Origin: Utricularia gibba
Lineage: Eukaryota; Plantae; Magnoliophyta
Reading direction: 5' to 3'
Assembly (NCBI GenBank): GCA_002189035.1
Contig: NEEC01000250.1
Location: 1-44,933 of the forward strand
Length of the DNA stretch: 44,933 bases
In this document: positions 2,168 to 33,207 of the stretch, piece by piece
Layout of the letters: each line of letters opens with the position of its first letter
How positions within the stretch are numbered: the first letter of the stretch is position 1
Program-made: the position numbers and the translations under genes
Notes under the pieces: model-generated
What the model was told of the DNA's origin: nothing
The model's database searches: none
What the model saw: only the letters and a program-made list of their open reading frames with translations

Positions 2168-2195
2168 GGGCCGGAATTCGGGTCGGGCTTGGGGG
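2168..2195 (+). other. Putative G-quadruplex motif in a2 (GGG-CCGGAATTC-GGG-TC-GGG-CTT-GGGGG); recurs in a2 of domain 1 and many trimers
   Basis: Four G-runs with loops of 9, 2 and 3 nt. Relaxed G4 pattern only. Confidence 0.35.
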
Positions 2196-9100: not shown

Positions 9101-12100
9101 GTCAGCTGTAGCCCGTCAAAAGAAGTGATGCATTTATTAACGTTGGGTTGTCGGCGGCTGCCCACATGGTTTTTCAAAGCAACAGCTTGCCGTTTTAAGG
9201 TGGGTGCTGTCGTTGGCAGCTTTGTAAGGGCCCAAGGTTTGGTCTGGCTCCTTAGCCCAATCGGGTCCTACTCGATGAAAATCGTGATGCATTTAATGAA
9301 GTTATGATGTCATGAGCGCCCCAAATGGTTTTCTCAACAACCTGATTTATATTTGACGAGGTGCTCTAGGCTGGCACTAGTATCGAGCAAATGGTCGAGT
9401 CGCGCTCTGGCCCATAGTCATTTGTAGCCCGGCCAAAAAAGTGATGCATTTATTAACGTTGGGTTTTCGGCGGCTGCCTACATGCTTTTTCAAGGAAAAG
9501 TTGTCGTTTTTTGCGGCTGGGAACTTCGTCCGGACCCAAGGTTCGGTCTGACTTCACAGCACAATAAGGTCCCATTCGACGAAAATCGTGATACCTTTAT
9601 TGAAGTTAGGATCTCATGACCCCCCAAATGCTTTTTTCAACAGCATGCTTTAAACTTGAGAAGGCGCTTTTGTGGGTCACCCAGATCGGGCCGGAATTCG
9701 GTCGGCTTGGGGGACAAAGTCAGCTGTAGCCCGTCAAAAGAAGTGATGCATTTATTAACGTTGGGTTGTCGGCGGCTGCCCACATGGTTTTTCAAGCAAC
9801 AGCTTGCCGTTTTAAGGCGGGTGCTGTCGTTGGCAGCTTTGTAAGGGCCCAAGGTTTGGTCTGGCTCCTTAGCCCAATCGGGTCCTACTCGATGAAAATC
9901 GTGATGCATTTAATGAAGTTATGATGTCATGAGCGCCCCAAATGGTTTTCTCAACAACCTGATTTATATTTGACGAGGTGCTCTAGGCTGGCACTAGTAT
10001 CGAGCAAATGGTCGAGTCGCGCTCTGGCCCATAGTCATTTGTAGCCCGGCCAAAAAAGTGATGCATTTATTAACGTTGGGTTTTCGGCGGCTGCCTACAT
10101 GCTTTTTCAAGGAAAAGTTGTCGTTTTTTGGCGGGTGCTGTTGTTGGGAACTTCGTCCGGACCAAGGTTCGGTCTGACTTCACAGCACAATAAGGTCCCA
10201 TTCGACGAAAATCGTGATACCTTTATTGAAGTGAGGATCTCAAGACCACCCCAAATGCTTTTTTCAACAGCATGCTATACACTTGAGAAGGCGCTTTTGT
10301 GGGTCACCGAGATCGGGCCGGAATTCGGGTCGGGCTTGGGGGACAAAGTCAGCTGTAGCCCGTCAAAAGAAGTGATGCATTTATTAACGTTGGGTTGTCG
10401 GCGGCTGCCCACATGGTTTTTCAAGCAACAGCTTGCCGTTTTAAGGTGGGTGCTGTCGTTGGCAGCTTTGTAAGGGCCCAAGGTTTGGTCTGGCTCCTTA
10501 GCCCAATCGGGTCCTACTCGATGAAAATCGTGATGCATTTAATGAAGTTATGATGTCATGAGCGCCCCAAATGGTTTTCTCAACAACCTGATTTATATTT
10601 GACGAGGTGCTCTAGGCTGGCACTAGTATCGAGCAAATGGTCGAGTCGCGCTCTGGCCCATAGTCATTTGTAGCCCGGCCAAAAAAGTGATGCATTTATT
10701 AACGTTGGGTTTTCGGCGGCTGCCTACATGCTTTTTCAAGGAAAAGTTGTCGTTTTTTGGCGGGTGCTGTTGTTGGGAACTTCGTCCGGACCCAAGGTTC
10801 GGTCTGACTTCACAGCACATAAGGTCCCATTCGACGAAAATCGTGATACCTTTATTGAAGTGAGGATCTCAAGACCACCCCAAATGCTTTTTTCAACAGC
10901 ATGCTATACACTTGAGAAGGCGCTTTTGTGGGTCACCGAGATCGGGCCGGAATTCGGGTCGGGCTTGGGGGACAAAGTCAGCTGTAGCCCGTCAAAAAAG
11001 TGATGCATTTATTAACGTTGGGTTGTCGGCGGCTGCCCACATGGTTTTTCAAGCAACAGCTTGCCGTTTTAAGGTGGGTGCTGTCGTTGGCAGCTTTGTA
11101 AGGGCCCAAGGTTTGGTCTGGCTCCTTAGCCCAATCGGGTCCTACTCGATGAAAATCGTGATGCATTTAATGAAGTTATGATGTCATGAGCGCCCCAAAT
11201 GGTTTTCTCAACAACCTGATTTATTTTGACGAGGTGCTCTAGGCTGGCACTAGTATCGAGCAAATGGTCGAGTCGCGCTCTGGCCCATAGTCATTTGTAG
11301 CCCGGCCAAAAAAGTGATGCATTTATTAACGTTGGGTTTTCGGCGGCTGCCTACATGCTTTTTCAAGGAAAAGTTGTCGTTTTTTGGCGGGTGCTGTTGT
11401 TGGGAACTTCGTCCGGACCCAAGGTTCGGTCTGACTTCACAGCACAATAAGGTCCCATTCGACGAAAATCGTGATACCTTTATTGAAGTGAGGATCTCAT
11501 GACCACCCCAAATGCTTTTTTCAACAGCATGCTTTAAACTTGAGAAGGCGCTTTTGTGGGTCACCCAGATCGGGCCGGAATTCGGTCGGGCTTGGGGGAC
11601 AAAGTCAGCTGTAGCCCGTCAAAAGAAGTGATGCATTTATTAACGTTGGGTTGTCGGCGGCTGCCCACATGGTTTTTCAAGCAACAGCTTGCCGTTTTAA
11701 GGCGGGTGCTGTCGTTGGCAGCTTTGTAAGGGCCCAAGGTTTGGTCTGGCTCCTTAGCCCAATCGGGTCCTACTCGATGAAAATCGTGATGCATTTAATG
11801 AAGTTAGGATGTCATGAGCGCCCCAAATGGTTTTCTCAACAACCTGATTTATATTTGACGAGGTGCTCTAGGCTGGCACTAGTATCGAGCAAATGGTCGA
11901 GTCGCGCTCTGGCCCATAGTCATTTGTAGCCCGGCCAAAAAAGTGATGCATTTATTAACGTTGGGTTTTCGGCGGCTGCCTACATGCTTTTCAAGGAAAA
12001 GTTGTCGTTTTTTGGCGGGTGCTGTTGTTGGGAACTTCGTCCGGACCCAAGGTTCGGTCTGACTTCACAGCACAATAAGGTCCCATTCGACGAAAATCGT

Positions 12101-15100
12101 GATACCTTTATTGAAGTGAGGATCTCAAGACCACCCCAAATGCTTTTTTCAACAGCATGCTTTAAACTTGAGAAGGCGCTTTTGTGGGTCACCGAGATCG
12201 GGCCGGAATTCGGGTCGGGCTTGGGGACAAAGTCAGCTGTAGCCCGTCAAAAGAAGTGATGCATTTATTAACGTTGGGTTGTCGGCGGCTGCCCACATGG
12301 TTTTTCAAGCAACAGCTTGCCGTTTTAAGGTGGGTGCTGTCGTTGGCAGCTTTGTAAGGGCCCAAGGTTTGGTCTGGCTCCTTAGCCCAATCGGGTCCTA
12401 CTCGATGAAAATCGTGATGCATTTAATGAAGTTATGATGTCATGAGCGCCCCAAATGGTTTTCTCAACAACCTGATTTATATTTGACGAGGTGCTCTAGG
12501 CTGGCACTAGTATCGAGCAAATGGTCGAGTCGCGCTCTGGCCCATAGTCATTTGTAGCCCGGCCAAAAAAGTGATGCATTTATTAACGTTGGGTTTTCGG
12601 CGGCTGCCTACATGCTTTTTCAAGGAAAAGTTGTCGTTTTTTGGCGGGTGCTGTTGTTGGGAACTTCGTCCGGACCCAAGGTTCGGTCTGACTTCACAGC
12701 ACAATAAGGTCCCATTCGACGAAAATCGTGATACCTTTATTGAAGTGAGGATCTCAAGACCACCCCAAATGCTTTTTTCAACAGCATGCTATACACTTGA
12801 GAAGGCGCTTTTGTGGGTCACCGAGATCGGGCCGGAATTCGGTCGGGCTTGGGGGACAAAGTCAGCTGTAGCCCGTCAAAAGAAGTGATGCATTTATTAA
12901 CGTTGGGTTGTCGGCGGCTGCCCACATGGTTTTTCAAGCAACAGCTTGCCGTTTTAAGGTGGGTGCTGTCGTTGGCAGCTTTGTAAGGGCCCAAGGTTTG
13001 GTCTGGCTCCTTAGCCCAATCGGGTCCTACTCGATGAAAATCGTGATGCATTTAATGAGTTATGATGTCATGAGCGCCCCAAATGGTTTTCTCAACAACC
13101 TGATTTATATTTGACGAGGTGCTCTAGGCTGGCACTAGTATCGAGCAAATGGTCGAGTCGCGCTCTGGCCCATAGTCATTTGTAGCCCGGCCAAAAAAGT
13201 GATGCATTTATTAACGTTGGGTTTTCGGCGGCTGCCTACATGCTTTTTCAAGGAAAAGTTGTCGTTTTTTGGCGGGTGCTGTTGTTGGGAACTTCGTCCG
13301 GACCCAAGGTTCGGTCTGACTTCACAGCACAATAAGGTCCCATTCGACGAAAATCGTGATACCTTTATTGAAGTGAGGATCTCAAGACCACCCCAAATGC
13401 TTTTTTCAACAGCATGCTTTACACTTGAGAAGGCGCTTTTGTGGGTCACCGAGATCGGGCCGGAATTCGGGTCGGGCTTGGGGGACAAAGTCAGCTGTAG
13501 CCCGTCAAAAGAAGTGATGCATTTATTAACGTTGGGTTGTCGGGGCTGCCCACATGGTTTTTCAAGCAACAGCTTGCCGTTTTAAGGTGGGTGCTGTCGT
13601 TGGCAGCTTTGTAAGGGCCCAAGGTTTGGTCTGGCTCCTTAGCCCAATCGGGTCCTACTCGATGAAAATCGTGATGCATTTAATGAAGTTATGATGTCAT
13701 GAGCGCCCCAAATGGTTTTCTCAACAACCTGATTTATATTTGACGAGGTGCTCTAGGCTGGCACTAGTATCGAGCAAATGGTCGAGTCGCGCTCTGGCCC
13801 ATAGTCATTTGTAGCCCGGCCAAAAAAGTGATGCATTTATTAACGTTGGGTTTTCGGCGGCTGCCTACATGCTTTTTCAAGGAAAAGTTGTCGTTTTTTG
13901 GCGGGTGCTGTTGTTGGAACTTCGTCCGGACCCAAGGTTCGGTCTGACTTCACAGCACAATAAGGTCCCATTCGACGAAAATCGTGATACCTTTATTGAA
14001 GTGAGGATCTCATGACCACCCCAAATGCTTTTTTCAACAGCATGCTATACACTTGAGAAGGCGCTTTTGTGGTCACCGAGATCGGGCCGGAATTCGGGTC
14101 GGGCTTGGGGGACAAAGTCAGCTGTAGCCCGTCAAAAGAAGTGATGCATTTATTAACGTTGGGTTGTCGGCGGCTGCCCACATGGTTTTTCAAGCAACAG
14201 CTTGCCGTTTTAAGGTGGGTGCTGTCGTTGGCAGCTTTGTAAGGGCCCAAGGTTTGGTCTGGCTCCTTAGCCCAATCGGGTCCTACTCGATGAAAATCGT
14301 GATGCATTTAATGAGTTATGATGTCATGAGCGCCCCAAATGGTTTTCTCAACAACCTGATTTATATTTGACGAGGTGCTCTAGGCTGGCACTAGTATCGA
14401 GCAAATGGTCGAGTCGCGCTCTGGCCCATAGTCATTTGTAGCCCGGCCAAAAAAGTGATGCATTTATTAACGTTGGGTTTTCGGCGGCTGCCTACATGCT
14501 TTTCAAGGAAAAGTTGTCGTTTTTTGGCGGGTGCTGTTGTTGGGAACTTCGTCCGGACCCAAGGTTCGGTCTGACTTCACAGCACAATAAGGTCCCATTC
14601 GACGAAAATCGTGATACCTTTATTGAAGTGAGGATCTCAAGACCACCCCAAATGCTTTTTTCAACAGCATGCTATACACTTGAGAAGGCGCTTTTGTGGG
14701 TCACCCAGATCGGGCCGGAATTCGGGTCGGGCTTGGGGACAAAGTCAGCTGTAGCCCGTCAAAAAAGTGATGCATTTATTAACGTTGGGTTGTCGGCGGC
14801 TGCCCACATGGTTTTTCAAGCAAAGCTTGCCGTTTTAAGGTGGGTGCTGTCGTTGGCAGCTTTGTAAGGGCCCAAGGTTTGGTCTGGCTCCTTAGCCCAA
14901 TCGGGTCCTACTCGATGAAAATCGTGATGCATTTAATGAAGTTATGATGTCATGAGCGCCCCAAATGGTTTCTCAACAACCTGATTTATATTTGACGAGG
15001 TGCTCTAGGCTGGCACTAGTATCGAGCAAATGGTCGAGTCGCGCTCTGGCCCATAGTCATTTGTAGCCCGGCCAAAAAAGTGATGCATTTATTAACGTTG

Positions 15101-15999
15101 GGTTTTCGGCGGCTGCCTACATGCTTTTCAAGGAAAAGTTGTCGTTTTTTGGCGGGTGCTGTTGTTGGGAACTTCGTCCGGACCCAAGGTTCGGTCTGAC
15201 TTCACAGCACAATAAGGTCCCATTCGACGAAAATCGTGATACCTTTATTGAAGTGAGGATCTCAAGACCACCCCAAATGCTTTTTTCAACAGCATGCTTT
15301 AAACTGAGAAGGCGCTTTTGTGGGTCACCGAAATCGGGCCGGAATTCGGGTCGGGCTTGGGGGACAAAGTCAGCTGTAGCCCGTCAAAAGAAGTGATGCA
15401 TTTATTAACGTTGGGTTGTCGGCGGCTGCCACATGGTTTTTCAAGCAACAGCTTGCCGTTTTAAGGCGGGTGCTGTCGTTGGCAGCTTTGTAAGGTCCCA
15501 AGGTTCGGTCAGGCTCCTGAGCCCAAATCGGGTCCTACTCGATGAAAATCGTGATGCATTTGCTTTTGTTAGGATGTCATGAGAACCCCAAATGGGTTTT
15601 CTCCACACTCTACTTTATATTTGAGAAGGCGCTCTCGGGGGGTTTTGGGATTGGGCCAGAGGTCGGGTCGGGCTCACGCCCATAGTCAGTTGTAGCCCGG
15701 AAAATAAGTGATGCATTTATCAACGTTGGGTTTTCGGCGGCTGCCTAAATGGTTTTTCAAGCAACAGCTTGCCGTTTTAAGGCGGGTGCTGTCGTTGGCA
15801 GCTTTGTAAGGGCCCAAGGTTTGGTCTGGCTCCTGAGCCCAATCGGGTCCTACTCGATGAAAATCGTGATGCATTTAATGAAGTTAGGATGTCATGATGA
15901 CGCCAAAATGGTCGACGAGGTGCTCTAGGCTGGCACTAGTATCGAGCAAATGGTCGAGTCGCGCTCTGGCCCATAGTCATTTGTAGCCCGGCCAAAAAA

Positions 16000-17225
16000 G
16001 TGATGCATTTATTAACGTTGGGTTTTCGGCGGCTGCCTACATGCTTTTTCAAGGAAAAGTTGTCGTTTTTTGGCGGGTGCTGTTGTTGGGAACTTCGTCC
16101 GGACCCAAGGTTCGGTCTGACTTCACAGCACAATAAGGTCCATTCGACGAAAATCGTGATACCTTTATTGAAGTTAGGATCTCATGACCACCCCAAATGC
16201 TTTTTTCAACAGCATGCTTTAAACTGAGAAGGCGCTTTTGTGGGTCACCGATCGGGCCGGAATTCGGGTCGGGCTTGGGGACAAAGTCAGCTGTAGCCCG
16301 TCAAAAGAAGTGATGCATTTATTAACGTTGGGTTGTCGGCGGCTGCCCACATGGTTTTTCAAGCAACAGCTTGCCGTTTTAAGGCGGGTGCTGTCGTTGG
16401 CAGCTTTGTAAGGTCCCAAGGTTCGGTCAGGCTCCTGAGCCCAATCGGGTCCTACTCGATGAAAATCGTGATGCATTTGCTTTTGTTAGGATGTCATGAG
16501 AACCCCAATGGGTTTTCTCAACACTCTACTTTATATTTGAGAAGGCGCTCTCGGGGGGTTTTGGGATGGGCCAGAGGTCGGGTCGGGCTCACGCCCATAG
16601 TCAGTTGTAGCCCGGAAAATAAGTGATGCATTTATCAACGTGGGTTTTCGGCGGCTGCCAAATGGTTTTTCAAGCAACAGCTTGCCGTTTTAAGGCGGGT
16701 GCTGTCGTTGGCAGCTTTGTAAGGGCCCAAGGTTCGGTCTGGCTCCTGAGCCAATCGGGTCCTACTCGATGAAAATCGTGATGCATTTGCTTTTGTTAGG
16801 ATGTCATGAGAACCCCAATGGTTTTCTCCACACTCTACTTTATATTTGAGAAGGCGCTCATTGGGCCAGAGTCGGGTCGGGCTCACGCCATAGTCAGTTG
16901 TAGCCCGGAAAATAAGTGATGCATTTATCAACGTTGGGTTTTCGGCGGCTGCCTAAATGGTTTTTCAAGAACAGCTTGCCGTTTTAAGGCGGGTGTGTCG
17001 TTGGCAGCTTTGTAAGGGCCCAAGGTTTGGTCTGGCTCCTGAGCCCAATCGGGTCCTACTCGATGAAAATCGTGATGCATTTAATGATTAGGATGTCATG
17101 AGCGCCCAAATGGTTTTCTCAACAACCTGATTTATATTTGACGAGGTGCTCTAGGCTGGCACTAGTATCGAGCAAATGGTCGAGTCGCGCTCTGGCCCAT
17201 AGTCATTTGTAGCCCGGCCAAAAAA
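16000..17225. repeat. Tetrameric HOR 1: a1-a2-b1'-c2-d1'-c2-d1-b2
   Basis: Two c2 starts (16468, 16778) and two d1-type starts (16623, 16916) lie between a1 starts at 16000 and 17226. Confidence 0.88.
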
Positions 17226-18160
17226 GTGATGCATTTATTAACGTTGGGTTTTCGGCGGCTGCCTACATGCTTTTTCAAGGAAAAGTTGTCGTTTTTTGGC
17301 GGGTGCTGTTGTTGGGAACTTCGTCCGGACCCAAGGTTCGGTCTGACTTCACAGCACAATAAGGTCCCATTCGACGAAAATCGTGATACCTTTATTGAAG
17401 TTAGGATCTCGTGACCACCCCAAATGCTTTTTTCAACAGCATGCTATACACTCGAGAGGGCGCTTTTGTGGGTCACCGAGATCGGGCCGGAATTCGGGTC
17501 GAGCTCGGGCCCAAAGTCAGTTGTAGCCCGTCAAAAGAAGTGATGCATTTATTAACGTTGGGTTCGGCGGCTGCCCACATGTTTTTCAAGCAACAGCTTG
17601 CCGTTTTAAGGCGGGTGCTGTCGTTGGCAGCTTTGTAAGGGCCCAAGGTTCGGTCAGGCTGAGCCTAATCGGGTCCTACTCGATGAAAATCGTGATGCAT
17701 TTGCTTTTGTTAGGATGTCATGAGAACCCCAATGGGTTTTCTCCACACTCTACTTTATATTTGAGAAGGCGCTCTCGGGGGGTTTTGGGATTGGGCCTGA
17801 GGTCGGGTCGGGCTCACCCATAGTCAGTTGTAGCCCGGAAAATAAGTGATGCATTTATCAACGTTGGGTTTTCGGCGGCTGCCTAAATGGTTTTTCAAGC
17901 AACAGCTTGCCGTTTTAAGGCGGGTGCTGTCGTTGGCAGCTTTGTAAGGGCCCAAGGTTTGGTCTGGCTCCTGAGCCCAATCGGGTCCTACTCGATGAAA
18001 ATCGTGATGCATTTAATGATGTTAGGATGTCATGAGCGCCCCAAATGGTTTTCTCAACAACTTGATTTATATTTGACGAGGTGCTCTAGGCTGGCACTAG
18101 TATCGAGCAAATGGTCGAGTCGCGCTCTGGCCCATAGTCATTTGTAGCCCGGCCAAAAAA

Positions 18161-19105
18161 GTGATGCATTTATTAACGTTGGGTTTTCGGCGGCTGCCTA
18201 CATGCTTTTTCAAGGAAAAGTTGTCGTTTTTTGGCGGGTGCTGTTGTTGGGAACTTCGTCCGGACCCAAGGTTCGGTCTGACTTCACAGCACAATAAGGT
18301 CCCATTCGACGAAAATCGTGATACCTTTATTGAAGTTAGGATCTCATGACCACCCCAAATGCTTTTTTCAACAGCATGCTTTAAACTTGAGAAGGCGCTT
18401 TTGTGGGTCACCCAGATCGGGCCGGAATTCGGGTCGGGCTTGGGGGACAAAGTCAACTGTAGCCCGTCAAAAGAAGTGATGCATTTATTAACGTTGGGTT
18501 GTCGGCGGCTGCCCACATGGTTTTTCAAGCAACAGCTTGCCGTTTTAAGGCGGGTGCTGTCGTTGGCAGCTTTGTAAGGTCCCAAGGTTCGGTCAGGCTC
18601 CTGAGCCCAATCGGGTCCTACTCGATGAAAATCGTGATGCATTTGCTTTTGTTAGGATGTCATGAGAACCCCAATGGGTTTTCTCCACACTCTACTTTAT
18701 ATTTGAGAAGGCGCTCTCGGGGGGTTTTGGGATTGGGCCAGAGGTCGGGTCGGGCTCACGCCCATAGTCAGTTGTAGCCCGGAAAATAAGTGATGCATTT
18801 ATCAACGTTGGGTTTTCGGCGGCTGCCTAAATGGTTTTTCAAGCAACAGCTTGCCGTTTTAAGGCGGGTGCTGTCGTTGGCAGCTTTGTAAGGGCCCAAG
18901 GTTTGGTCTGGCTCCTGAGCCCAATCGGGTCCTACTCGATGAAAATCGTGATGCATTTAATGAAGTTAGGATGTCATGAGCGCCCCAAATGGTTTTCTCA
19001 ACAACCTGATTTATATTTGACGAGGTGCTCTAGGCTGGCACTAGTATCGAGCAAATGGTCGAGTCGCGCTCTGGCCCATAGTCATTTGTAGCCCGGCCAA
19101 AAAAA
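18161..19105 (+). repeat. Reference trimer: a1 18161, b1' 18476, c2 18634, d1 18790, b2 18948
   Basis: Near-consensus copy (945 nt, one extra A in the terminal A run). Confidence 0.95.
18719..18754 (+). other. Putative G-quadruplex motif in c2 (GGGGGG-TTTT-GGG-ATT-GGG-CCAGAGGTC-GGG-TC-GGG); homologous motif in most c2 copies
   Basis: Five G-runs of 3 or more with loops of 4, 3, 9 and 2 nt. Matches a relaxed (loop up to 12 nt) G4 pattern. Folding is not demonstrated. Confidence 0.4.
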
Positions 19106-20043
19106 GTGATGCATTTATTAACGTTGGGTTTTCGGCGGCTGCCTACATGCTTTTTCAAGGAAAAGTTGTCGTTTTTTGGCGGGTGCTGTTGTTGGGAACT
19201 TCGTCCGGACCCAAGGTTCGGTCTGACTTCACAGCACAATAAGGTCCCATTCGACGAAAATCGTGATACCTTTATTGAAGTTAGGATCTCATGACCACCC
19301 AAATGCTTTTTTCAACAGCATGCTTTAAACTTGAGAAGGCGCTTTTGTGGGTCACCCAGATCGGGCCGGAATTCGGGTCGGGCTCTGGGGACAAAGTCAG
19401 CTGTAGCCCGTCAAAAGAAGTGATGCATTTATTAACGTTGGGTTGTCGGCGGCTGCCCACATGGTTTTTCAAGCAACAGCTTGCCGTTTTAAGGCGGGTG
19501 CTGTCGTTGCTTTGTAAGGGCCCAAGGTTCGGTCAGGCTCCTGAGCCAATCGGGTCCTACTCGATGAAAATCGTGATGCATTTGCTTTTGTTAGGATGTC
19601 ATGAGAACCCCAATGGGTTTTCTCCACACTCTACTTTATATTTGAGAAGGCGCTCTCGGGGGGTTTTGGGATTGGGCCAGAGGTCGGGTCGGGCTCACGC
19701 CCATAGTCAGTTGTAGCCCGGAAAATAAGTGATGCATTTATCAACGTTGGGTTTTCGGCGGCTGCCTAAATGGTTTTTCAAGCAACAGCTTGCCGTTTTA
19801 AGGCGGGTGCTGTCGTTGGCAGCTTTGTAAGGGCCCAAGGTTTGGTCTGGCTCCTGAGCCCAATCGGGTCCTACTCGATGAAAATCGTGATGCATTTAAT
19901 GAAGTTAGGATGTCATGAGCGCCCCAAATGGTTTTCTCAACAACCTGATTTATATTTGACGAGGTGCTCTAGGCTGGCACTAGTATCGAGCAAATGGTCG
20001 AGTCGCGCTCTGGCCCATAGTCATTTGTAGCCCGGCCAAAAAA

Positions 20044-21205
20044 GTGATGCATTTATTAACGTTGGGTTTTCGGCGGCTGCCTACATGCTTTTTCAAGGAA
20101 AAGTTGTCGTTTTTGGCGGGTGCTGTTGTTGGGAACTTCGTCCGGACCCAAGGTTCGGTCTGACTTCACAGCACAATAAGGTCCCATTCGACGAAAATCG
20201 TGATACCTTTATTGAAGTTAGGATCTCGTGACCACCCAAATGCTTTTTTCAACAGCATGCTATACACTCGAGAGGGCGCTTTTGTGGGTCACCGAGATCG
20301 GGCCGGAATTCGGGTCGAGCTCGGGCCCAAAGTCAGTGTAGCCCGTCAAAAGAAGTGATGCATTTATTAACGTTGGGTTGTCGGCGGCTGCCCACATGGT
20401 TTTTCAAGCAACAGCTTGCCGTTTTAAGGCGGGTGCTGTCGTTGGCAGCTTTGTAAGGTCCCAAGGTTCGGTCAGGCTCCTGAGCCCAATCGGGTCCTAC
20501 TCGATGAAAATCGTGATGCATTGCTTTTGTTAGGATGTCATGAGAACCCCAATGGGTTTTCTCAACACTACTTTATATTTGAGAAGGCGCTCTCGGGGGG
20601 TTGGGATGGGGCCAGAGGTCGGGTCGGGCTCACGCCCATAGTCAGTTGTAGCCCGGAAAATAAGTGATGCATTTATCAACGTTGGGTTTTCGGCGGCTGC
20701 CAAATGGTTTTTCAAGCAACAGCTTGCCGTTTTAAGGCGGGTGTGTCGTTGGCAGTTTTGTAAGGGCCCAGGTTCGGTCTGGCTCCTGAGCCCAATCGGG
20801 TCCTACTCGATGAAAATCGTGATGCATTTGCTCCCCAATGGGTTTTTCCACACTCTACTCTCGGCTCGGGTCGGGCTCATGCCCATAGTCAGCCCGGGAA
20901 CATTTATCAACGTTGGGTTTTCGGCGGCTGCCTAAATGGTTTTTCAAGCACAGCTTGCCGTTTTAAGGCGGGTGCTGTCGTTGGCAGCTTTGTAAGGGCC
21001 AAGGTTTGGTCTGGCTCCTGAGCCCAATCGGCCTACTCGATGAAAATCGTGATGCATTTAATGATGTTAGGATGTCATGAGCGCCCCAAATGGTTTTCTC
21101 AACAACCTGATTTATATTTGACGAGGTGCTCTAGGCTGGCACTAGTATCGAGCAAATGGTCGAGTCGCGCTCTGGCCCATAGTCATTTGTAGCCCGGCCA
21201 AAAAA
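20044..21205. repeat. Tetrameric HOR 2; second c2 reduced to ~82 nt
   Basis: c2 near 20512, d1' at 20664, ragged second c2 at 20819-20900, headless d1 from 20901. Confidence 0.75.
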
Positions 21206-24014
21206 GTGATGCATTTATTAACGTTGGGTTTTCGGCGGCTGCCTACATGCTTTTTCAAGGAAAAGTTGTCGTTTTTTGGCGGGTGCTGTTGTTGGGAACT
21301 TCGTCCGGACCCAAGGTTCGGTCTGACTTCACAGCACAATAAGGTCCCATTCGACGAAAATCGTGATACCTTTATTGAAGTTAGGATCTCATGACCACCC
21401 CAAATGCTTTTTTCAACAGCATGCTATAAACTTGAGAAGGCGCTTTTGTGGGTCACCGAGATCGGGCCGGAATTCGGGTCGGCTCGGGCCAAAGTCAGTT
21501 GTAGCCCGTCAAAAGAAGTGATGCATTTATTAACGTTGGGTTGTCGGCGGCTGCCCACATGGTTTTTCAAGCAACAGCTTGCCGTTTTAAGGCGGGTGCT
21601 GTCGTTGGCAGCTTTGTAAGGGCCCAAGGTTCGGTCAGGCTCCTGAGCCTAATCGGGTCCTACTCGATGAAAATCGTGATGCATTTGCTTTTGTTAGGAT
21701 GTCATGAGAACCCCAATGGGTTTTCTCCACACTCTACTTTATATTTGAGAAGGCGCTCTCGGGGGGTTTGGGATTGGGCCTGAGGTCGGGTCGGGCTCAC
21801 GCCCATAGTCAGTTGTAGCCCGGAAAATAAGTGATGCATTTATCAACGTTGGGTTTTCGGCGGCTGCCTAAATGGTTTTTCAAGCAACAGCTTGCCGTTT
21901 TAAGGCGGGTGCTGTCGTTGGCAGCTTTGTAAGGGCCCAAGGTTTGGTCTGGCTCCTGAGCCCAATCGGGTCCTACTCGATGAAAATCGTGATGCATTTA
22001 ATGATGTTAGGATGTCATGAGCGCCCCAAATGGTTTTCTCAACAACCTGATTTATATTTGACGAGGTGCTCTAGGCTGGCACTAGTATCGAGCAAATGGT
22101 CGAGTCGCGCTCTGGCCCATAGTCATTTGTAGCCCGGCCAAAAAAGTGATGCATTTATTAACGTTGGGTTTTCGGCGGCTGCCTACATGCTTTTTCAAGA
22201 AAAGTTGTCGTTTTTTGGCGGGTGCTGTTGTTGGGAACTTCGTCGGACCCAAGGTTCGGTCTGACTTCACAGCACAATAAGGTCCCATTCGACGAAAATC
22301 GTGATACCTTTATTGAAGTTAGGATCTCATGACCACCCCAAATGCTTTTTTCAACAGCATGCTTTAAACTTGAGAAGGCGCTTTTGTGGGTCACCCAGAT
22401 CGGGCCGGAATTCGGGTCGGGCTGGGGACAAAGTCAGCTGTAGCCCGTCAAAAGAAGTGATGCATTTATTAACGTTGGGTTGTCGGCGGCTGCCCATGGT
22501 TTTTCAAGCAACAGCTTGCCGTTTTAAGGCGGGTGCTGTCGTTGGCAGCTTTGTAAGGGCCCAAGGTTCGGTCAGGCTCCTGAGCCTAATCGGGTCCTAC
22601 TCGATGAAAATCGTGATGCATTTGCTTTTGTTAGGATGTCATGAGAACCCCAATGGTTTTTCTCCACACTCTACTTTATATTTGAGAAGGCGCTCTCGGG
22701 GGGTTTGGGATTGGGCCAGAGGTCGGGTCGGGCTCACGCCCATAGTCAGTTGTAGCCGGAAAATAAGTGATGCATTTATCAACGTTGGGTTTCGGCGGCT
22801 GCCTAAATGGTTTTTCAAGCAACAGCTTGCCGTTTTAAGGCGGGTGCTGTCGTTGGCAGCTTTGTAAGGGCCCAAGGTTTGGTCTGGCTCCTGAGCCAAT
22901 CGGGTCCTACTCGATGAAAATCGTGATGCATTTAATGAAGTTAGGATGTCATGAGCGCCCCAAATGGTTTTCTCAACAACCTGATTTATATTTGACGAGG
23001 TGCTCTAGGCTGGCACTAGTATCGAGCAAATGGTCGAGTCGCGCTCTGGCCCATAGTCATTTGTAGCCCGGCCAAAAAAGTGATGCATTTATTAACGTTG
23101 GGTTTTCGGCGGCTGCCTACATGCTTTTTCAAGGAAAAGTTGTCGTTTTTTGGCGGGTGCTGTTGTGGGAACTTCGTCCGGACCCAAGGTTCGGTCTGAC
23201 TTCACAGCACAATAAGGTCCCATTCGACGAAAATCGTGATACCTTTATTGAAGTTAGGATCTCGTGACCACCCCAAATGCTTTTTTCAACAGCATGCTAA
23301 CACTCGAGAGGGCGCTTTTGTGGGTCACCGAGATCGGGCCGGAATTCGGGTCGGGCTCGGGACAAAGTCAGCTGTCCCGTCAAAAGAAGTGATGCATTTA
23401 TTAACGTTGGGTTGTCGGCGCCTGCCCACATGGTTTTTCAAGCAACAGCTTGCCGTTTTAAGGCGGGTGCTGTCGTTGGCAGCTTTGTAAGGTCCCAAGT
23501 TCGGTCAGGCTCCTGAGCCTAATCGGGTCCTACTCGATGAAAATCGTGATGCATTTGCTTTTGTTAGGATGTCATGAGAACCCCAATGGGTTTTCTCCAC
23601 ACTCTACTTTATATTTGAGAAGGCGCTCTCGGGGGGTGGGATTGGGCCAGAGGTCGGGTCGGGCTCACGCCCATAGTCAGTTGTAGCCCGGAAAATAAGT
23701 GATGCATTTATCAACGTTGGGTTTTCGGCGGCTGCCTAAATGGTTTTTCAAGCAACAGCTTGCCGTTTTAAGGCGGGTGCTGTCGTTGGCAGCTTTGTAA
23801 GGGCCCAAGGTTTGGTCTGGCTCCTGAGCCCAATCGGGTCCTACTCGATGAAAATCGTGATGCATTTAATGAAGTTAGGATGTCATGAGCGCCCCAAATG
23901 GTTTTCTCAACAACCTGATTTATATTTGACGAGGTGCTCTAGGCTGGCACTAGTATCGAGCAAATGGTCGAGTCGCGCTCTGGCCCATAGTCATTTGTAG
24001 CCCGGCCAAAAAAA

Positions 24015-25116
24015 GTGATGCATTTATTAACGTTGGGTTTTCGGCGGCTGCCTACATGCTTTTTCAAGGAAAAGTTGTCGTTTTTTGGCGGGTGCTGTTG
24101 TTGGGAACTTCGTCCGACCCAAGGTTCGGTCTGACTTCACAGCAATAAGGTCCCATTCGACGAAAATCGTGATACCTTTATTGAAGTTAGGATCTCGTGA
24201 CCACCCCAAATGCTTTTTTCAACAGCATGCTATACACTCGAGAGGGCGCTTTTGTGGGTCACCGAGATCGGGCCGGAATTCGGGTCGAGCTCGGGCCCAA
24301 AGTCAGCTGTAGCCGACAAAAGAAGTGATGCATTTATTAACGTTGGGTTGTCGGCGGCTGCCCACATGGTTTTTCAAGCAACAGCTTGCCGTTTTAAGGC
24401 GGGTGCTGTCGTTGGCAGCTTTGTAAGGGCCCAAGGTTCGGTCAGGCTCCTGAGCCCAATCGGGTCCTACTCGATGAAAATCGTGATGCATTTGCTTTTG
24501 TTAGGATGTCATGAGAACCCCAATGGGTTTTCTCAACACTCTACTTTATATTTGAGAAGGCGCTCTCGGGGGTTTGGGATGGGCCTCGGGTCGGGCTGCC
24601 CATAGTCAGTTGTAGCCCGGAAAATAAGTGATGCATTTATCAACGTTGGGTTTTCGGCGGCTGCCAAATGGTTTTTCAAGCAACAGCTTGCCGTTTTAAG
24701 GCGGGTGCTGTCGTTGGCAGCTTTGTAAGGGCCCAAGGTTCGGTCTGGCTCCTGAGCAATCGGGTCCTACTCGATGAAAATCGTGATGCATTTAGGATGC
24801 CCGAGAAGAAAAAAGTCAGTTGTAGCCTAAGTGATGCATTTATAACGTTGGGTTTTCGGCGGCTGCAAATGGTTTTTCAAGGCTTGCCGTTTTAAGAGCT
24901 TTGTAAGGGCCCAAGGTTTGGTCTGGCTCTGAGCCCAATCGGGTCCTACTCGATGAAAATCGTGATGCATTTAATGAAGTTAGGATGTCATGAGCGCCCA
25001 AATGGTTTTCTCAACAACCTGATTTATATTTGACGAGGTGCTCTAGGCTGGCACTAGTATCGAGCAAATGGTCGAGTCGCGCTCTGGCCCATAGTCATTT
25101 GTAGCCCGGCAAAAAA
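24015..25116. repeat. Tetrameric HOR 3; second c2 reduced to ~48 nt and second d1 partly deleted
   Basis: c2 at 24483, d1' near 24628, c2 remnant at 24783-24830, d1 at 24831 with internal gaps. Confidence 0.65.
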
Positions 25117-28100
25117 GTGATGCATTTATTAACGTTGGGTTTTCGGCGGCTGCCTACATGCTTTTTCAAGGAAAAGTTGTCGTTTTTTGGCGGGTGCTGT
25201 TGTTGGGAACTTCGTCCGGACCCAAGGTTCGGTCTGACTTCACAGCACAATAAGGTCCCATTCGACGAAAATCGTGATACCTTTATTGAAGTTAGGATCT
25301 CATGACCACCCCAAATGCTTTTTTCAAACAGCATGCTGAGAAGGCGCTTTTGTGGGTCACCGAGATCGGGCCGGAATTCGGGTCGGCTCGGGCCCAAAGT
25401 CAGCTGTAGCCCGTCAAAAGAAGTGATGCATTTATTAACGTTGGGTTGTCGGCGGCTGCCCACATGGTTTTTCAAGCAACAGCTTGCCGTTTTAAGGCGG
25501 GTGCTGTCGTTGGCAGCTTTGTAAGGGCCCAAGGTTCGGTCAGGCTCCTGAGCCAATCGGGTCCTACTCGATGAAAATCGTGATGCATTTGCTTTTGTTA
25601 GGATGTCATGAGAACCCCAATGGGTTTTCTCCACACTCTACTTTATATTTGAGAAGGCGCTCTCGGGGGTTTTGGGATTGGGCCGAGGTCGGGTCGGGCT
25701 CACGCCCATAGTCAGTTGTAGCCCGGAAAATAAGTGATGCATTTATCAACGTTGGGTTTTCGGCGGCTGCCTAAATGGTTTTTCAAGCAACAGCTTGCCG
25801 TTTTAAGGCGGGTGCTGTCGTTGGCAGCTTTGTAAGGGCCCAAGGTTTGGTCTGGCTCCTGAGCCCAATCGGGTCCTACTCGATGAAAATCGTGATGCAT
25901 TTAATGAAGTTAGGATGTCATGAGCGCCCAAATGGTTTTCTCAACAACCTGATTTATATTTGACGAGGTGCTCTAGGCTGGCACTAGTATCGAGCAAATG
26001 GTCGAGTCGCGCTCTGGCCATAGTCATTTGTAGCCCGGCCAAAAAAGTGATGCATTTATTAACGTTGGGTTTTCGGCGGCTGCCTACATGCTTTTTCAAG
26101 GAAAAGTTGTCGTTTTTTGGCGGGTGCTGTTGTTGGGAACTTCGTCCGGACCCAAGGTTCGGTCTGACTTCACAGCACAATAAGGTCCCATTCGACGAAA
26201 ATCGTGATACCTTTATTGAAGTTAGGATCTCATGACCACCCCAAATGCTTTTTTCAACAGCATGCTTTAAACTTGAGAAGGCGCTTTTGTGGGTCACCAG
26301 ATCGGGCCGGAATTCGGGTCGGGCTTGGGGACAAAGTCAGCTGTAGCCCGTCAAAAGAAGTGATGCATTTATTAACGTTGGGTTGTCGGCGGCTGCCCAC
26401 ATGGTTTTTCAAGCAACAGCTTGCCGTTTTAAGGCGGGTGCTGTCGTTGGCAGCTTTGTAAGGGCCCAAGGTTCGGTCTGGCTCCTGAGCCCAATCGGGT
26501 CCTACTCGATGAAAATCGTGATGCATTTGCTTTTGTTAGGATGTCATGAGAACCCCAATGGGTTTTTCTCACACTCTACTTTATATTTGAGAAGGCGCTC
26601 TCGGGGGGTTTTGGGATTGGGCCAGAGGTCGGGTCGGGCCCATAGTCAGTTGTAGCCCGGAAAAAGTGATGCATTTATCAACGTTGGGTTTTCGGCGGCT
26701 GCCTAAATGGTTTTTCAAGCAACAGCTTGCCGTTTTAAGGCGGGTGCTGTCGTTGGCAGCTTTGTAAGGGCCCAAGGTTTGGTCTGGCTCCTGAGCCCAA
26801 TCGGGTCCTACTCGATGAAAATCGTGATGCATTTAATGAAGTTAGGATGTCATGAGCGCCCCAAATGGTTTTCTCAACAACCTGATTTATATTTGACGAG
26901 GTGCTCTAGGCTGGCACTAGTATCGAGCAAATGGTCGAGTCGCGCTCTGGCCCATAGTCATTTGTAGCCCGGCCAAAAAAGTGATGCATTTATTAACGTT
27001 GGGTTTTCGGCGGCTGCCTACATGCTTTTTCAAGGAAAAGTTGTCGTTTTTTGGCGGGTGCTGTTGTTGGGAACTTCGTCCGGACCCAAGGTTCGGTCTG
27101 ACTTCACAGCACAATAAGGTCCCATTCGACGAAAATCGTGATACCTTTATTGAAGTTAGGATCTCATGACCACCCAAATGCTTTTTTCAACAGCATGCTA
27201 TACACTTGAGAAGGCGCTTTTGTGGGTCACCGAGATCGGGCCGGAATTCGGGTCGGGCTCGGGGACAAAGTCAGCTGTAGCCCGTCAAAAGAAGTGATGC
27301 ATTTATTAACGTTGGGTTGTCGGCGGCTGCCCACATGGTTTTTCAAGCAACAGCTTGCCGTTTTAAGGCGGGTGCTGTCGTTGGCAGCTTTGTAAGGGCC
27401 CAAGGTTCGGTCAGGCTCCTGAGCCCAATCGGGTCCTACTCGATGAAAATCGTGATGCATTTGCTTTTGTTAGGATGTCATGAGAACCCCAATGGGTTTT
27501 CTCCACACTCTACTTTATATTTGAGAAGGCGCTCTCGGGGGGTTGGGATTGGGCCAGAGGTCGGGTCGGGCTCACGCCCATAGTCAGTTGTAGCCCGGAA
27601 AATAAGTGATGCATTTATCAACGTTGGGTTTTCGGCGGCTGCCTAAATGGTTTTTCAAGCAACAGCTTGCCGTTTTAAGGCGGGTGCTGTCGTTGGCAGC
27701 TTTGTAAGGGCCAAGGTTTGGTCTGGCTCCTGAGCCCAATCGGGTCCTACTCGATGAAAATCGTGATGCATTTAATGAAGTTAGGATGTCATGAGCGCCC
27801 CAAATGGTTTTCTCAACAACCTGATTTATATTTGACGAGGTGCTCTAGGCTGGCACTAGTATCGAGCAAATGGTCGAGTCGCGCTCTGGCCCATAGTCAT
27901 TTGTAGCCCGGCCAAAAAAGTGATGCATTTATTAACGTTGGGTTTTCGGCGGCTGCCTACATGCTTTTTCAAGGAAAAGTTGTCGTTTTTTGGCGGGTGC
28001 TGTTGTTGGGAACTTCGTCCGGACCCAAGGTTCGGTCTGACTTCACAGCACAATAAGGTCCCATTCGACGAAAATCGTGATACCTTTATTGAAGTTAGGA

Positions 28101-31100
28101 TCTCATGACCACCCAAATGCTTTTTTCAACAGCATGCTATAACTTGAGAAGGCGCTTTTGTGGGTCACCGAGATCGGGCCGGAATTCGGGTCGAGCTCGG
28201 GCCAAAGTCAGCTGTAGCCCGACAAAAGAAGTGATGCATTTATTAACGTTGGGTTGTCGGCGGCTGCCCACATGGTTTTTCAAGCAACAGCTTGCCGTTT
28301 TAAGGCGGGTGCTGTCGTTGGCAGCTTTGTAAGGGCCCAAGGTTCGGTCAGGCTCCTGAGCCAATCGGGTCCTACTCGATGAAAATCGTGATGCATTTGC
28401 TTTTGTTAGGATGTCATGAGAACCCCAATGGGTTTTCTCCACACTCTACTTTATATTTGAGAAGGCGCTCTCGGGGGGTTTTGGGATTGGGCCAGAGGTC
28501 GGGTCGGGCTCACGCCCATAGTCAGTTGTAGCCCGGAAAATAAGTGATGCATTTATCAACGTTGGGTTTTCGGCGGCTGCCTAAATGGTTTTTCAAGCAA
28601 CAGCTTGCCGTTTTAAGGCGGGTGCTGTCGTTGGCAGCTTTGTAAGGGCCCAAGGTTTGGTCTGGCTCCTGAGCCCAATCGGGTCCTACTCGATGAAAAT
28701 CGTGATGCATTTAATGAAGTTAGGATGTCATGAGCGCCCCAAATGGTTTTCTCAACAACCTGATTTATATTTGACGAGGTGCTCTAGGCTGGCACTAGTA
28801 TCGAGCAAATGGTCGAGTCGCGCTCTGGCCCATAGTCATTTGTAGCCCGGCCAAAAAAGTGATGCATTTATTAACGTTGGGTTTTCGGCGGCTGCCTACA
28901 TGCTTTTTCAAGGAAAAGTTGTCGTTTTTTGGCGGGTGCTGTTGTTGGGAACTTCGTCCGGACCCAAGGTTCGGTCTGACTTCACAGCACAATAAGGTCC
29001 CATTCGACGAAAATCGTGATACCTTTATTGAAGTTAGGATCTCATGACCACCCAAATGCTTTTTTCAACAGCATGCTTTAAACTTGAGAAGGCGCTTTTG
29101 TGGGTCACCGAGATCGGGCCGGAATTCGGGTCGGGCTTGGGGACAAAGTCAGCTGTAGCCCGTCAAAAGAAGTGATGCATTTATTAACGTTGGGTTGTCG
29201 GCGGCTGCCCACATGGTTTTTCAAGCAACAGCTTGCCGTTTTAAGGCGGGTGCTGTCGTTGGCAGCTTTGTAAGGGCCCAAGGTTCGGTCAGGCTCCTGA
29301 GCCCAATCGGGTCCTACTCGATGAAAATCGTGATGCATTTGCTTTTGTTAGGATGTCATGAGAACCCCAATGGGTTTTCTCCACACTCTACTTTATATTT
29401 GAGAAGGCGCTCTCGGGGGGTTTGGGATTGGGCCAGAGGTCGGGTCGGGCTCACGCCCATAGTCAGTTGTAGCCCGGAAAATAAGTGATGCATTTATCAA
29501 CGTTGGGTTTTCGGCGGCTGCCTAAATGGTTTTTCAAGCAACAGCTTGCCGTTTTAAGGCGGGTGCTGTCGTTGGCAGCTTTGTAAGGGCCCAAGGTTTG
29601 GTCTGGCTCCTGAGCCCAATCGGGTCCTACTCGATGAAAATCGTGATGCATTTAATGAAGTTAGGATGTCATGAGCGCCCCAAATGGTTTTCTCAACAAC
29701 CTGATTTATATTTGACGAGGTGCTCTAGGCTGGCACTAGTATCGAGCAAATGGTCGAGTCGCGCTCTGGCCCATAGTCATTTGTAGCCCGGCCAAAAAGT
29801 GATGCATTTATTAACGTTGGGTTTTCGGCGGCTGCCTACATGCTTTTTCAAGGAAAAGTTGTCGTTTTTTGGCGGTGCTGTTTGTTGGGAACTTCGTCCG
29901 GACCCAAGGTTCGGTCTGACTTCACAGCACAATAAGGTCCCATTCGACGAAAATCGTGATACCTTTATTGAAGTTAGGATCTCATGACCACCCCAAATGC
30001 TTTTTTCAACAGCATGCTTTAAACTTGAGAAGGCGCTTTTGTGGGTCACCGATCGGGCCGGAATTCGGGTCGGGCTTGGGGGCAAAGTCAGCTGTAGCCC
30101 GTCAAAAGAAGTGATGCATTTATTAACGTTGGGTTGTCGGCGGCTGCCCACATGGTTTTTCAAGCAACAGCTTGCCGTTTTAAGGCGGGTGCTGTCGTTG
30201 GCAGCTTTGTAAGGGCCCAAGGTTCGGTCAGGCTCCTGAGCCCAATCGGGTCCTACTCGATGAAAATCGTGATGCATTTGCTTTTGTTAGGATGTCATGA
30301 GAACCCCAATGGTTTTTCTCCACACTCTACTTTATATTTGAGAAGGCGCTCTCGGGGGATGGGATTGGCCAGAGGTCGGGTCGGGCTCATGCCCATAGTC
30401 AGTTGTAGCCCGGAAAATAAGTGATGCATTTATCAACGTTGGGTTTTCGGCGGCTGCCTAAATGGTTTTTCAAGCAACAGCTTGCCGTTTTAAGGCGGGT
30501 GCTGTCGTTGGCAGCTTTGTAAGGGCCCAAGGTTTGGTCTGGCTCCTGAGCCCAATCGGGTCCTACTCGATGAAAATCGTGATGCATTTAATGAAGTTAG
30601 GATGTCATGAGCGCCCCAAATGGTTTTCTCAACAACCTGATTTATATTTGACGAGGTGCTCTAGGCTGGCACTAGTATCGAGCAAATGGTCGAGTCGCGC
30701 TCTGGCCCATAGTCATTTGTAGCCCGGCCAAAAAAGTGATGCATTTATTAACGTTGGGTTTTCGGCGGCTGCCTACATGCTTTTTCAAGAAAAGTTGTCG
30801 TTTTTTGGCGGGTGCTGTTGTTGGGAACTTCGTCCGGACCCAAGGTTCGGTCTGACTTCACAGCACAATAAGGTCCCATTCGACGAAAATCGTGATACCT
30901 TTATTGAAGTTAGGATCTCATGACCCCCAAATGCTTTTTTCAACAGCATGCTTAACTTGAGAAGGCGCTTTTGTGGGTCACCGAGATCGGGCCGGAATTC
31001 GGTCGGCTCGGGCCCAAAGTCAGCTGTAGCCCGTCAAAAGAAGTGATGCATTTATTAACGTTGGGTTGTCGGCGGCTGCCCACATGGTTTTTCAAGCAAC

Positions 31101-33207
31101 AGCTTGCCGTTTTAAGGCGGGTGCTGTCGTTGGCAGCTTTGTAAGGGCCCAAGGTTCGGTCAGGCTCCTGAGCCCAATCGGGTCCTACTCGATGAAAATC
31201 GTGATGCATTTGCTTTTGTTAGGATGTCATGAGAACCCCAATGGGTTTTCTCCACTCTACTTTATATTTGAGAAGGCGCTCTCGGGGGGTTTTGGGATTG
31301 GGCCAGAGGTCGGGTCGGGCTCACGCCCATAGTCAGTTGTAGCCCGGAAAATAAGTGATGCATTTATCAACGTTGGGTTTTCGGCGGCTGCCTAAATGGT
31401 TTTTCAAGCAACAGCTTGCCGTTTTAAGGCGGGTGCTGTCGTTGGCAGCTTTGTAAGGGCCCAAGGTTTGGTCTGGCTCCTGAGCCCAATCGGGTCCTAC
31501 TCGATGAAAATCGTGATGCATTTAATGAAGTTAGGATGTCATGAGCGCCCCAAATGGTTTTCTCAACAACCTGATTTATATTTGACGAGGTGCTCTAGGC
31601 TGGCACTAGTATCGAGCAAATGGTCGAGTCGCGCTCTGGCCCATAGTCATTTGTAGCCCGGCCAAAAAAGTGATGCATTTATTAACGTTGGGTTTTCGGC
31701 GGCTGCCTACATGCTTTTTCAAGGAAAAGTTGTCGTTTTTTGGCGGGTGCTGTTGTTGGGAACTTCGTCCGGACCCAAGGTTCGGTCTGACTTCACAGCA
31801 CAATAAGGTCCCATTCGACGAAAATCGTGATACCTTTATTGAAGTTAGGATCTCATGACCACCCAAATGCTTTTTTCAACAGCATGCTTTAACTTGAGAA
31901 GGCGCTTTTGTGGGTCACCGAGATCGGGCCGGAATTCGGGTCGGGCTGGGGACAAAGTCAGCTGTAGCCCGTCAAAAGAAGTGATGCATTTATTAACGTT
32001 GGGTTGTCGGCGGCTGCCCACATGGTTTTTCAAGCAACAGCTTGCCGTTTTAAGGCGGGTGCTGTCGTTGGCAGCTTTGTAAGGCCCAAGGTTCGGTCAG
32101 GCTCCTGAGCCAATCGGGTCCTACTCGATGAAAATCGTGATGCATTTGCTTTTGTTAGGATGTCATGAGATCCCCAATGGTTTTTCTCCACACTCTACTT
32201 TATATTTGAGAAGGCGCTCTCGATTGGGCAGAGGTCGGGTCGGGCTCACGCCCATAGTCAGTTGTAGCCCGGAAAATAAGTGATGCATTTATCAACGTTG
32301 GGTTTTCGGCGGCTGCCTAAATGGTTTTTCAAGCAACAGCTTGCCGTTTTAAGGCGGGTGCTGTCGTTGGGCTTTGTAAGGGCCCAAGGTTTGGTCTGGC
32401 TCCTGAGCCCAATCGGGTCCTACTCGATGAAAATCGTGATGCATTTAATGAAGTTAGGATGTCATGAGCGCCCCAAATGGTTTTCTCAACAACCTGATTT
32501 ATATTTGACGAGGTGCTCTAGGCTGGCACTAGTATCGAGCAAATGGTCGAGTCGCGCTCTGGCCCATAGTCATTTGTAGCCCGGCCAAAAAAGTGATGCA
32601 TTTATTAACGTTGGGTTTTCGGCGGCTGCCTACATGCTTTTTCAAGGAAAAGTTGTCGTTTTTTGGCGGGTGCTGTTGTTGGGAACTTCGTCCGGACCCA
32701 AGGTTCGGTCTGACTTCACAGCACAATAAGGTCCCATTCGACGAAAATCGTGATACCTTTATTGAAGTTAGGATCTCATGACCACCAAATGCTTTTTTCA
32801 ACAGCATGCTATACACTTGAGAAGGCTTTTGTGGGTCACCGAGATCGGGCCGGAATTCGGGTCGAGCTCGGCCCAAAGTCAGCTGTAGCCCGACAAAAGA
32901 AGTGATGCATTTATTAACGTTGGGTTGTCGGCGGCTGCCCACATGGTTTTTCAAGCAACAGCTTGCCGTTTTAAGGCGGGTGCTGTCGTTGGCTTTTGTA
33001 AGGGCCCAAGGTTTGGTCTGGCTCCTGAGCCCAATCGGGTCCTACTCGATGAAAATCGTGATGCATTTAATGAAGTTAGGATGTCATGAGCGCCCCAAAT
33101 GGTTTTCTCAACAACCTGATTTTATTGACGAGGTGCTTTAGCTGGCTTAGTATCGAGCAAATGGTCGAGTCGCGCTCTGGCCCAGTCATTTTAGCCCGGC
33201 CAAAAAA

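Follow-up and report, generated by a model that had tools for sequence, protein, structure and literature searches.

In human alpha satellite, the higher-order unit has abundant variants, which differ from it by whole monomers, carry hybrid monomers of conserved length and are explained by unequal exchange (PMC9549924 section 2.5.2; PMC9248890). Among them are forms of 16, 15, 14 and 13 monomers in the array of chromosome 17, and others are catalogued for hg38 and T2T-CHM13. The junctions of such hybrids were reportedly mapped to a preferred part of the monomer by Waye and Willard in 1986 and by Warburton, Waye and Willard in 1993. In the model of Smith (1976), in the form in which it is cited in PMC9549924, misaligned repeats give a deletion and a duplication product, and repeated rounds homogenise the array and expand variants. 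Cascading higher-order repeats, in which a monomer type recurs inside one unit, are described for chromosomes 3 and 15 of T2T-CHM13 (PMC11050224, PMC11157248). Here we describe a satellite array of the plant Utricularia gibba, represented by contig NEEC01000250.1 over its full length of 44,933 nucleotides (nt; hereafter the window), in which units of four, six and eight monomers occur together and the four-monomer unit is clearly to be read as a derivative of the six-monomer unit.

The array is no new kind of system but a clean plant example, since changes of unit length with hybrid monomers are routine in human alpha satellite. Whole-monomer variants, a length-conserving hybrid of two monomers of the same unit, out-of-register exchange and local amplification are common to both (PMC9549924; PMC9248890). 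Unlike alpha satellite, the plant satellite has monomers of about 157 base pairs (bp) arranged in odd/even pairs, the exchanged step is the 314-bp pair rather than the single monomer, and deletion and putative gain forms lie within one stretch of 45 kilobases (kb). The special feature of this case is a parent unit that contains one monomer type twice, so that instability is built in. In this respect the unit, which may be written a1-a2-b-c2-b-b2 with type b present twice, resembles the cascading repeats; the papers on these, in title and abstract, give a classification and no tested link between recurrence and change of unit length. Smith's model, as cited, deals with populations of events, whereas here neither crossover as against annealing or slippage, nor a single event, can be read from the sequence. 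No paper on this satellite was found in the literature searched, a search outside which the long-read genome paper of the organism (PMC5465930) fell.

Monomers and units of the array

The whole 44.9-kb window was described by Tandem Repeats Finder as a single tandem array with a period of 314 bp (2 x ~157 bp) and 143.8 copies. It was cut at a conserved anchor into 289 monomers of about 157 bp, and clustering of these gave an odd class a1, the even classes a2, b2 and c2, a five-copy a2/c2 hybrid, and one tight odd class within which b1, b1', d1 and d1' were told apart by their neighbouring monomers. These monomers form regular units of four, six and eight, the monomer order being preserved between variants: the dimer a1-a2-b1-b2 (n = 36; ~627 bp), the trimer a1-a2-b1'-c2-d1-b2 (n = 20; ~940 bp) and the tetramer a1-a2-b1'-c2-d1'-c2-d1-b2 (n = 3; nominally 1257 bp). 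The variants differ by a whole odd/even pair, with the register intact, and the formula proposed in the initial annotation, a1-a2-b1-[c2-d1]n-b2 with n = 0, 1 or 2, is a correct description of the units in the window.

Origin of the four-monomer unit

The consensus sequences of b1' and d1 differ at 6 of 158 positions, four of them (14, 26, 39 and 41) towards the 5' end and two (115 and 120) towards the 3' end. The two odd monomers are 96% identical, and the adjoining even monomers c2, b2 and a2 are 24-29% apart; this likeness of b1' and d1 amid divergent even monomers makes pairing of units 314 bp out of register possible. Between the two sets of markers, b1' and d1 share an identical block. 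The initial annotation had put its length at no less than 63 nt; the block does exist, its actual length being 73 nt (positions 42-114), and in short-read contigs it is seen as a unitig of its own (69 nt, 16666-16734). The alleles given there for b1' (TATTAAC, TTGTCGG, GCCCACATGG and GGTTCGGTC) and for d1 (TATCAAC, TTTTCGG, GCCTAAATGG and GGTTTGGTC) were read again as stated. A sixth marker, position 120, was absent from that account; it is A in most b1' and T in d1 and d1'. Haplotypes were then written for every copy at positions 14, 26, 39 and 41 on one side of the block and 115 and 120 on the other (Table 1).

The dimer segment a2-b1-b2 was compared in a three-sequence scan with the parents a2-b1'-c2 and c2-d1-b2. 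The scan gave 49 sites of the first parent followed by 40 sites of the second, one switch explaining 89 of 89 sites, and this switch falls between positions 41 and 115 of b1. All 36 b1 copies carry the four 5' alleles of b1' together with both 3' alleles of d1. The dimers are of two subfamilies on separate a2 and b2 backgrounds. For the right-hand subfamily, in domain 3 of the array, the consensus b1R equals the predicted b1'/d1 hybrid at all 158 positions, with no private change; in the left-hand b1L, two private substitutions relative to the exact hybrid are fixed. That the dimer b1 joins a 5' part of b1' to a 3' part of d1, as had been claimed from the letters alone, is therefore upheld by the single switch, by the exact hybrid in b1R and by the presence of derived alleles of both parents.

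The derived alleles were recognised by polarising the odd monomers with a1 as the outgroup, under which G26, C39 and A120 are derived in b1' and C14, A41 and T115 are derived in d1. In b1, the b1'-derived G26 and C39 are combined with the d1-derived T115, in 5'-to-3' order. Because b1 bears derived alleles of both lineages, the direction of change is from trimer to dimer. The even monomers agree with this direction: c2 is 38 edits from b2 and 46 from a2, against 6 edits between b1' and d1, and with c2 at 24-29% from b2 and a2 the trimer is not a recent duplication of the dimer. The divergence of c2 marks it as an old monomer, and b1' and d1 have stayed similar to each other; either the odd positions would have been homogenised, or the unit would have been assembled from pairs sharing one odd monomer type. 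Judged from these comparisons, the dimer clearly derives from the trimer, and the deletion itself is beyond doubt. Its junction lies most likely within the 73-nt block common to b1' and d1. Within the odd monomer itself there are just six informative sites (4 + 2), and the exact placement of the junction is thus weakly anchored.

A second collapse of the unit

Besides the b1 dimers, five dimers of the form a1-(a2/c2 hybrid)-d1-b2 were found at 33208-33813, 36002-37856 and 39736-40352. These correspond to the deletion expected from a2-c2 pairing at the identical 314-bp offset, and this independent collapse implies that misalignment occurred more than once. The a2/c2 junction offers no more than five shared nucleotides (GGGCC), in contrast to the 73 nt of the b1'/d1 block, and the two monomers are 71% identical. 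The junction looks more like microhomology-mediated joining, or exchange accompanied by mismatch repair, than like exchange within a long block. The copy at 36777 retains the EcoRI site of a2 just past the junction, and for this reason it is a mosaic or has a slightly different junction.

The eight-monomer unit

The three tetramers contain an additional odd monomer, d1', between two copies of c2. The d1' of tetramer 1 agrees with d1 at positions 14, 26 and 41, lacks one nucleotide in GCC[T/C]AAATGG, and reads C115 and T120; where the initial annotation gave the allele GCCTAAATGG, the actual reading is GCCAAATGG. The 1-nt loss has two possible readings: either d1 has dropped T39, or the b1' allele is present in a C run that has become shorter. 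No b1'-derived allele is carried by d1'. Of the proposal that d1' is a 5' part of d1 joined to a 3' part of b1', the 5' d1 alleles hold good; a hybrid is compatible with the 3' side, but the sole b1'-like state there, C115, is ancestral. When c2-d1'-c2 was scanned in the same manner, 87 of 89 sites were explained, with the switch in the 73-nt block; nearly all of these sites lie in the flanking even monomers, that is, they restate the position of d1' between two c2.

At position 120, d1' has T as against A in the b1' of the same tetramers, and d1' therefore did not arise from the present neighbouring units. T120 is the ancestral state. The mismatch is no contradiction to a hybrid origin, given this ancestral state and the existence of b1' copies with C115/T120. 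The combination C115/T120 was also found in a short-read contig together with the downstream sequence, at a depth similar to that of the T115 contig and in independent samples. Taken together, the tetramer is plausible as the gain form of the exchange.

The first c2 of all three tetramers carries A53, which occurs in no other c2 of the window, and the d1' haplotype is likewise shared by the three. These shared private markers indicate that the tetramers represent one amplified event and not three. Private variants are also common to the trimers that follow tetramers 1 and 2 (17226-18160 and 21206-22145), and are missing after tetramer 3; the variants in common speak for a genuine block duplication that spanned about 4 kb. 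A clean 4-kb super-repeat, which would prove the tetramers to be simple copies, holds only in part, the a2 haplotypes of the three tetramers being different.

A model of the change in unit length

A six-monomer unit that holds an odd monomer type twice, as b1' and d1, could pair with its neighbours 314 bp out of register. The dimer has lost the 3' part of b1', the whole of c2 and the 5' part of d1, leaving the length-conserving hybrid b1. The eight-monomer unit would be the matching gain of one c2-d pair at the identical offset; it would have arisen once, from a b1' with C115/T120, and would then have been multiplied together with adjacent units in a block about 4 kb long. Dimer and tetramer would thus reflect the same kind of misalignment without being both products of one event. 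Unequal sister-chromatid exchange, single-strand annealing, template switching and slippage are candidate routes, among which the sequence cannot tell, and the deletion may equally have come from single-strand annealing or slippage, without a reciprocal product.

As a whole, this history, with a deletion from trimer to dimer and a single gain for the tetramer through the same kind of misalignment, is in our judgement probable. It appears defensible to say that both forms are what a 314-bp misalignment of b1' and d1 yields, with the same offset and the same marker-free block. The case illustrates the passage of an array from a six- to a four-monomer unit, which took place twice in two registers, and perhaps once towards an eight-monomer unit. 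The b1R hybrid, which matches its prediction base for base, is of use for teaching and for annotating the satellite of this genome.

Several observations weigh against parts of this history. The unit lengths are those of an assembly consensus and not of single molecules. In tetramers 2 and 3 the second c2 is broken up by many small losses, which add up to 75 and 107 nt out of about 155; this suggests that many of the reads behind the consensus lacked the extra pair. The hybrid nature of d1' is read from the single site C115, which is an ancestral CpG state common to a1, and the 1-nt loss of d1' was seen in none of the short-read contigs across the site, which all have the T there but offer low power for a three-copy variant. 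For the dimer, the placement of the b1 junction in the 73-nt block depends mainly on T115, one CpG-to-TpG site that could recur independently; if T115 did recur, the junction would fall in the next identical stretch, formed by positions 121-158 and 11 nt of the even monomer.

Assembly quality at the tetramers

Erosion of the sequence was measured as deviations from the class consensus. Deletions amount to 617 nt over the window, insertions to 56 nt and substitutions to 330 nt. Of the deleted nt, 236 come from six monomers, numbers six and seven in each tetramer, and outside these 381 deleted stand against 56 inserted nt. Such a deletion pattern is typical of consensus errors in a noisy long-read assembly and not of real mutation. 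The ratio of deleted to inserted nt is about 7 to 1, and the deletions concentrate where the unit length changes, clusters being seen at 9441, 15866, 16778, 20819, 24783, 24831, 32137, 33365 and 41448.

The initial annotation gave the tetramer a length of 1257 bp. The measured lengths, 1226, 1162 and 1102 bp, fall short of this through deletions scattered over the second c2 and the d1 after it. The losses in the second c2 amount to 17, 75 and 107 nt in tetramers 1, 2 and 3, respectively. In tetramer 1, 14 of the 17 lost nt fall in a G-rich stretch that is also deleted in some c2 copies of trimers. In tetramers 2 and 3 the scattered losses are almost free of substitutions; the second c2 of tetramer 3 is down to fragments of 48 nt in all, and the following d1 is shorter by 8 nt in tetramer 2 (20899) and by 27 nt in tetramer 3 (24831). 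Short-read contigs were compared over 16505-16812, a stretch that runs from the first c2 through d1' into the second c2. They have the majority letter at 16566, 16640 and 16750, where tetramer 1 has 1-nt deletions, and the best runs contain just 0.40-0.47 of the sampled 31-mers. The 5' and 3' markers could not be linked in these contigs, which break at the identical block and are powerless for variants of few copies.

From this pattern, the reads apparently disagreed on the extra 314 bp at the tetramers, especially tetramers 2 and 3. Three causes are conceivable: real tetramers onto which trimer reads were wrongly mapped, heterogeneity of the locus, or an error in the draft. The assembly is thus least reliable exactly at the changes of unit length, and claims of eight-monomer units need single-molecule reads. 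For such claims, the initial annotation had proposed a blot after EcoRI or SpeI digestion, with bands expected near 630, 944 and 1257 bp. This would be of little help, as digestion in the window gives confounding fragments without any tetramer. Between 32528 and 44333, lost EcoRI and SpeI sites turn pairs of dimers into fragments of 1222-1251 bp, and in one case 1541 bp, which mimic the tetramer bands.

Alternative explanations

It is unlikely, though worth serious weighing, that the tetramers, at least tetramers 2 and 3, are assembly artefacts laid over real trimers, the extra 314 bp of a noisy draft having been partly polished away. Such an origin would fit the accumulation of deletions in the sixth and seventh monomers, the lengths graded between 944 and 1257 bp, the excess of deletions over insertions outside these monomers, and the short-read contigs, both in their majority letters within tetramer 1 and in their low 31-mer content. 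Tetramer 1, however, is nearly intact, its 14-nt loss being shared with ordinary trimer c2, and A53 and the d1' haplotype are present in no trimer, so reads of neighbouring trimers would not generate them. An overlap at the 314-bp offset would moreover align monomers that are 18-29% apart, too poor a match for an assembler, and real tetramers among trimers would draw mis-mapped trimer reads and suffer equal erosion. The shared substitution markers, and the cleanliness of tetramer 1, which is akin to that of ordinary units, speak for the reality of at least one tetramer, and an artefactual origin of all three seems rather improbable.

There is also a small but real chance that the tetramers exist and that d1' is not a hybrid, being instead a copy of the d1 lineage in which the ancestral CpG at 115 survived. 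In that case the extra c2-d pair would predate the spread of C115T in d1, or C would have been regained by a short conversion; the trimers could even be deletion derivatives of a longer unit. This would suit the composition of d1', which has the d1-derived C14 and A41, ancestral states at 26, 115 and 120, and nothing derived from b1', and it would suit the closeness of the pairs [c2-d1'] and [c2-d1], which differ at about 3 of 314 positions. CpG is, as a matter of general knowledge, the most mutable type of site in methylated plant repeats, and position 115 is such a site. More steps would be needed, however, as T115 would have to be homogenised across the d1 of trimers and the last d1 of tetramers while skipping d1'. 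One exchange in the 73-nt block gives C115 and T120 free of mutation if the b1' donor had T120, and b1' donors with T120 exist, both in the window (26360, 34752 and 41291) and in short-read contigs.

A stronger version of the exchange model holds that the 73-nt block is a preferred exchange site and the unit a cassette a1-a2-b-[c2-b]n-b2, in which n changes recurrently in both directions, both having been caught in cis. This is improbable; if it were true, the rate and the site preference of unit-length change in a plant satellite would become directly measurable.

Very little credence can be given to a dimer-first history, in which the dimer is ancestral and the trimer was formed by insertion of a c2-containing pair. 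Dimers are the commonest units in the window (36 + 5 against 20 + 3), but c2, at 24-29% from every other even monomer, was not copied from a2 or b2 in recent times. Three sites would moreover have to return to the state of a1 (26 and 39 in d1, 115 in b1'), and b1R has no private change relative to the hybrid of neighbouring trimers; on polarisation with a1 as outgroup this history was rejected.

When an unequal exchange takes place, its two reciprocal products come to lie on different chromatids, which part at division. The literal reading of the initial annotation, that dimer and tetramer are the two reciprocal products of one exchange retained in a single array, is very unlikely: both switches do have the 314-bp offset and the 73-nt interval in common, but this interval, to which alone the junctions coincide, is the sole marker-free one and hence gives no resolution, retention in the same array would need further events by established genetics, d1' has T120 against A120 in the b1' of the same and neighbouring units, and the dimers, on a2 and b2 backgrounds unlike those of the tetramers, fall into two subfamilies with separate histories.

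Layout of the array and minor observations

The units and the haplotypes of the odd monomers are listed in Table 1.

Table 1. Positions of units in the window and haplotypes of odd monomers (positions 14, 26, 39, 41 / 115, 120; the slash stands at the identical block).
Feature	Position	Strand	Remarks
Domain 1: 24 dimers a1-a2-b1L-b2	40..15079	+	~627 bp each; b1L haplotype TGCC/TT in 24/24
b1 given as example in the initial annotation	2852-3009		inside domain 1
First trimer a1-a2-b1'-c2-d1-b2	15080..15999	+	domain boundary; its b2 short by 25 nt
Tetramer 1, 1226 bp	16000..17225	+	best preserved; b1' 16310, first c2 16468, d1' 16623, second c2 16778, d1 16916
d1' of tetramer 1	16623..16777	+	73-nt marker-free block at about 16662-16734
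Three trimers	17226..20043	+	
Tetramer 2, 1162 bp	20044..21205	+	d1' 20664, second c2 20819, following d1 20899
Three trimers	21206..24014	+	
Tetramer 3, 1102 bp	24015..25116	+	d1' 24628, second c2 24783, following d1 24831
Eight trimers	25117..32592	+	b1' at 26360 bears the C115/T120 allele
Domain 3, mixed	32593..44863	+	12 dimers with exact-hybrid b1R, 5 dimers a1-(a2/c2 hybrid)-d1-b2, 2 trimers at 34440 and 40981
b1 haplotype TGCC/TT			36/36 copies
b1' haplotype TGCC/CA			17 copies
b1' haplotype TGCC/CT	26360, 34752, 41291		3 copies
d1 haplotype CTTA/TT			17 clean copies, 3 with gap or variant
d1' haplotype C, T, 1-nt loss, A / C, T	16623, 20664, 24628		3/3 copies

With its nucleosome-sized monomer and its higher-order structure, the array is a plant satellite and a candidate centromeric repeat. 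The base composition is flat along the window, and an Rfam scan of 3 kb of the window matched no RNA family. Short-read contigs from four samples of three studies, which are labelled as one organism or as plant metagenome, contain the satellite in abundance, and a 34-nt piece of the 73-nt block had no match among public metagenome contigs. A special DNA structure in the block as the cause of exchange was considered and rejected, the folding scores being unremarkable (z = -1.5 for the block and -1.9 for the monomer).

The sequence GGTTCGGTCAGG, in which position 120 is A, is present in 17 of the 20 b1' copies (15393-32138). A120 was not seen in the short-read contigs of four runs at a threshold of 1%, and GGTTCGGTCTGG is common there; A120 may be specific to this array or to the assembled accession. 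The a2 monomers of trimers and tetramers (15237-32000) are of two haplotypes that differ at no fewer than 10 linked sites and are mixed as a mosaic among neighbouring units. One of these a2 haplotypes is common to the right-hand dimers and to the trimer at 40981.

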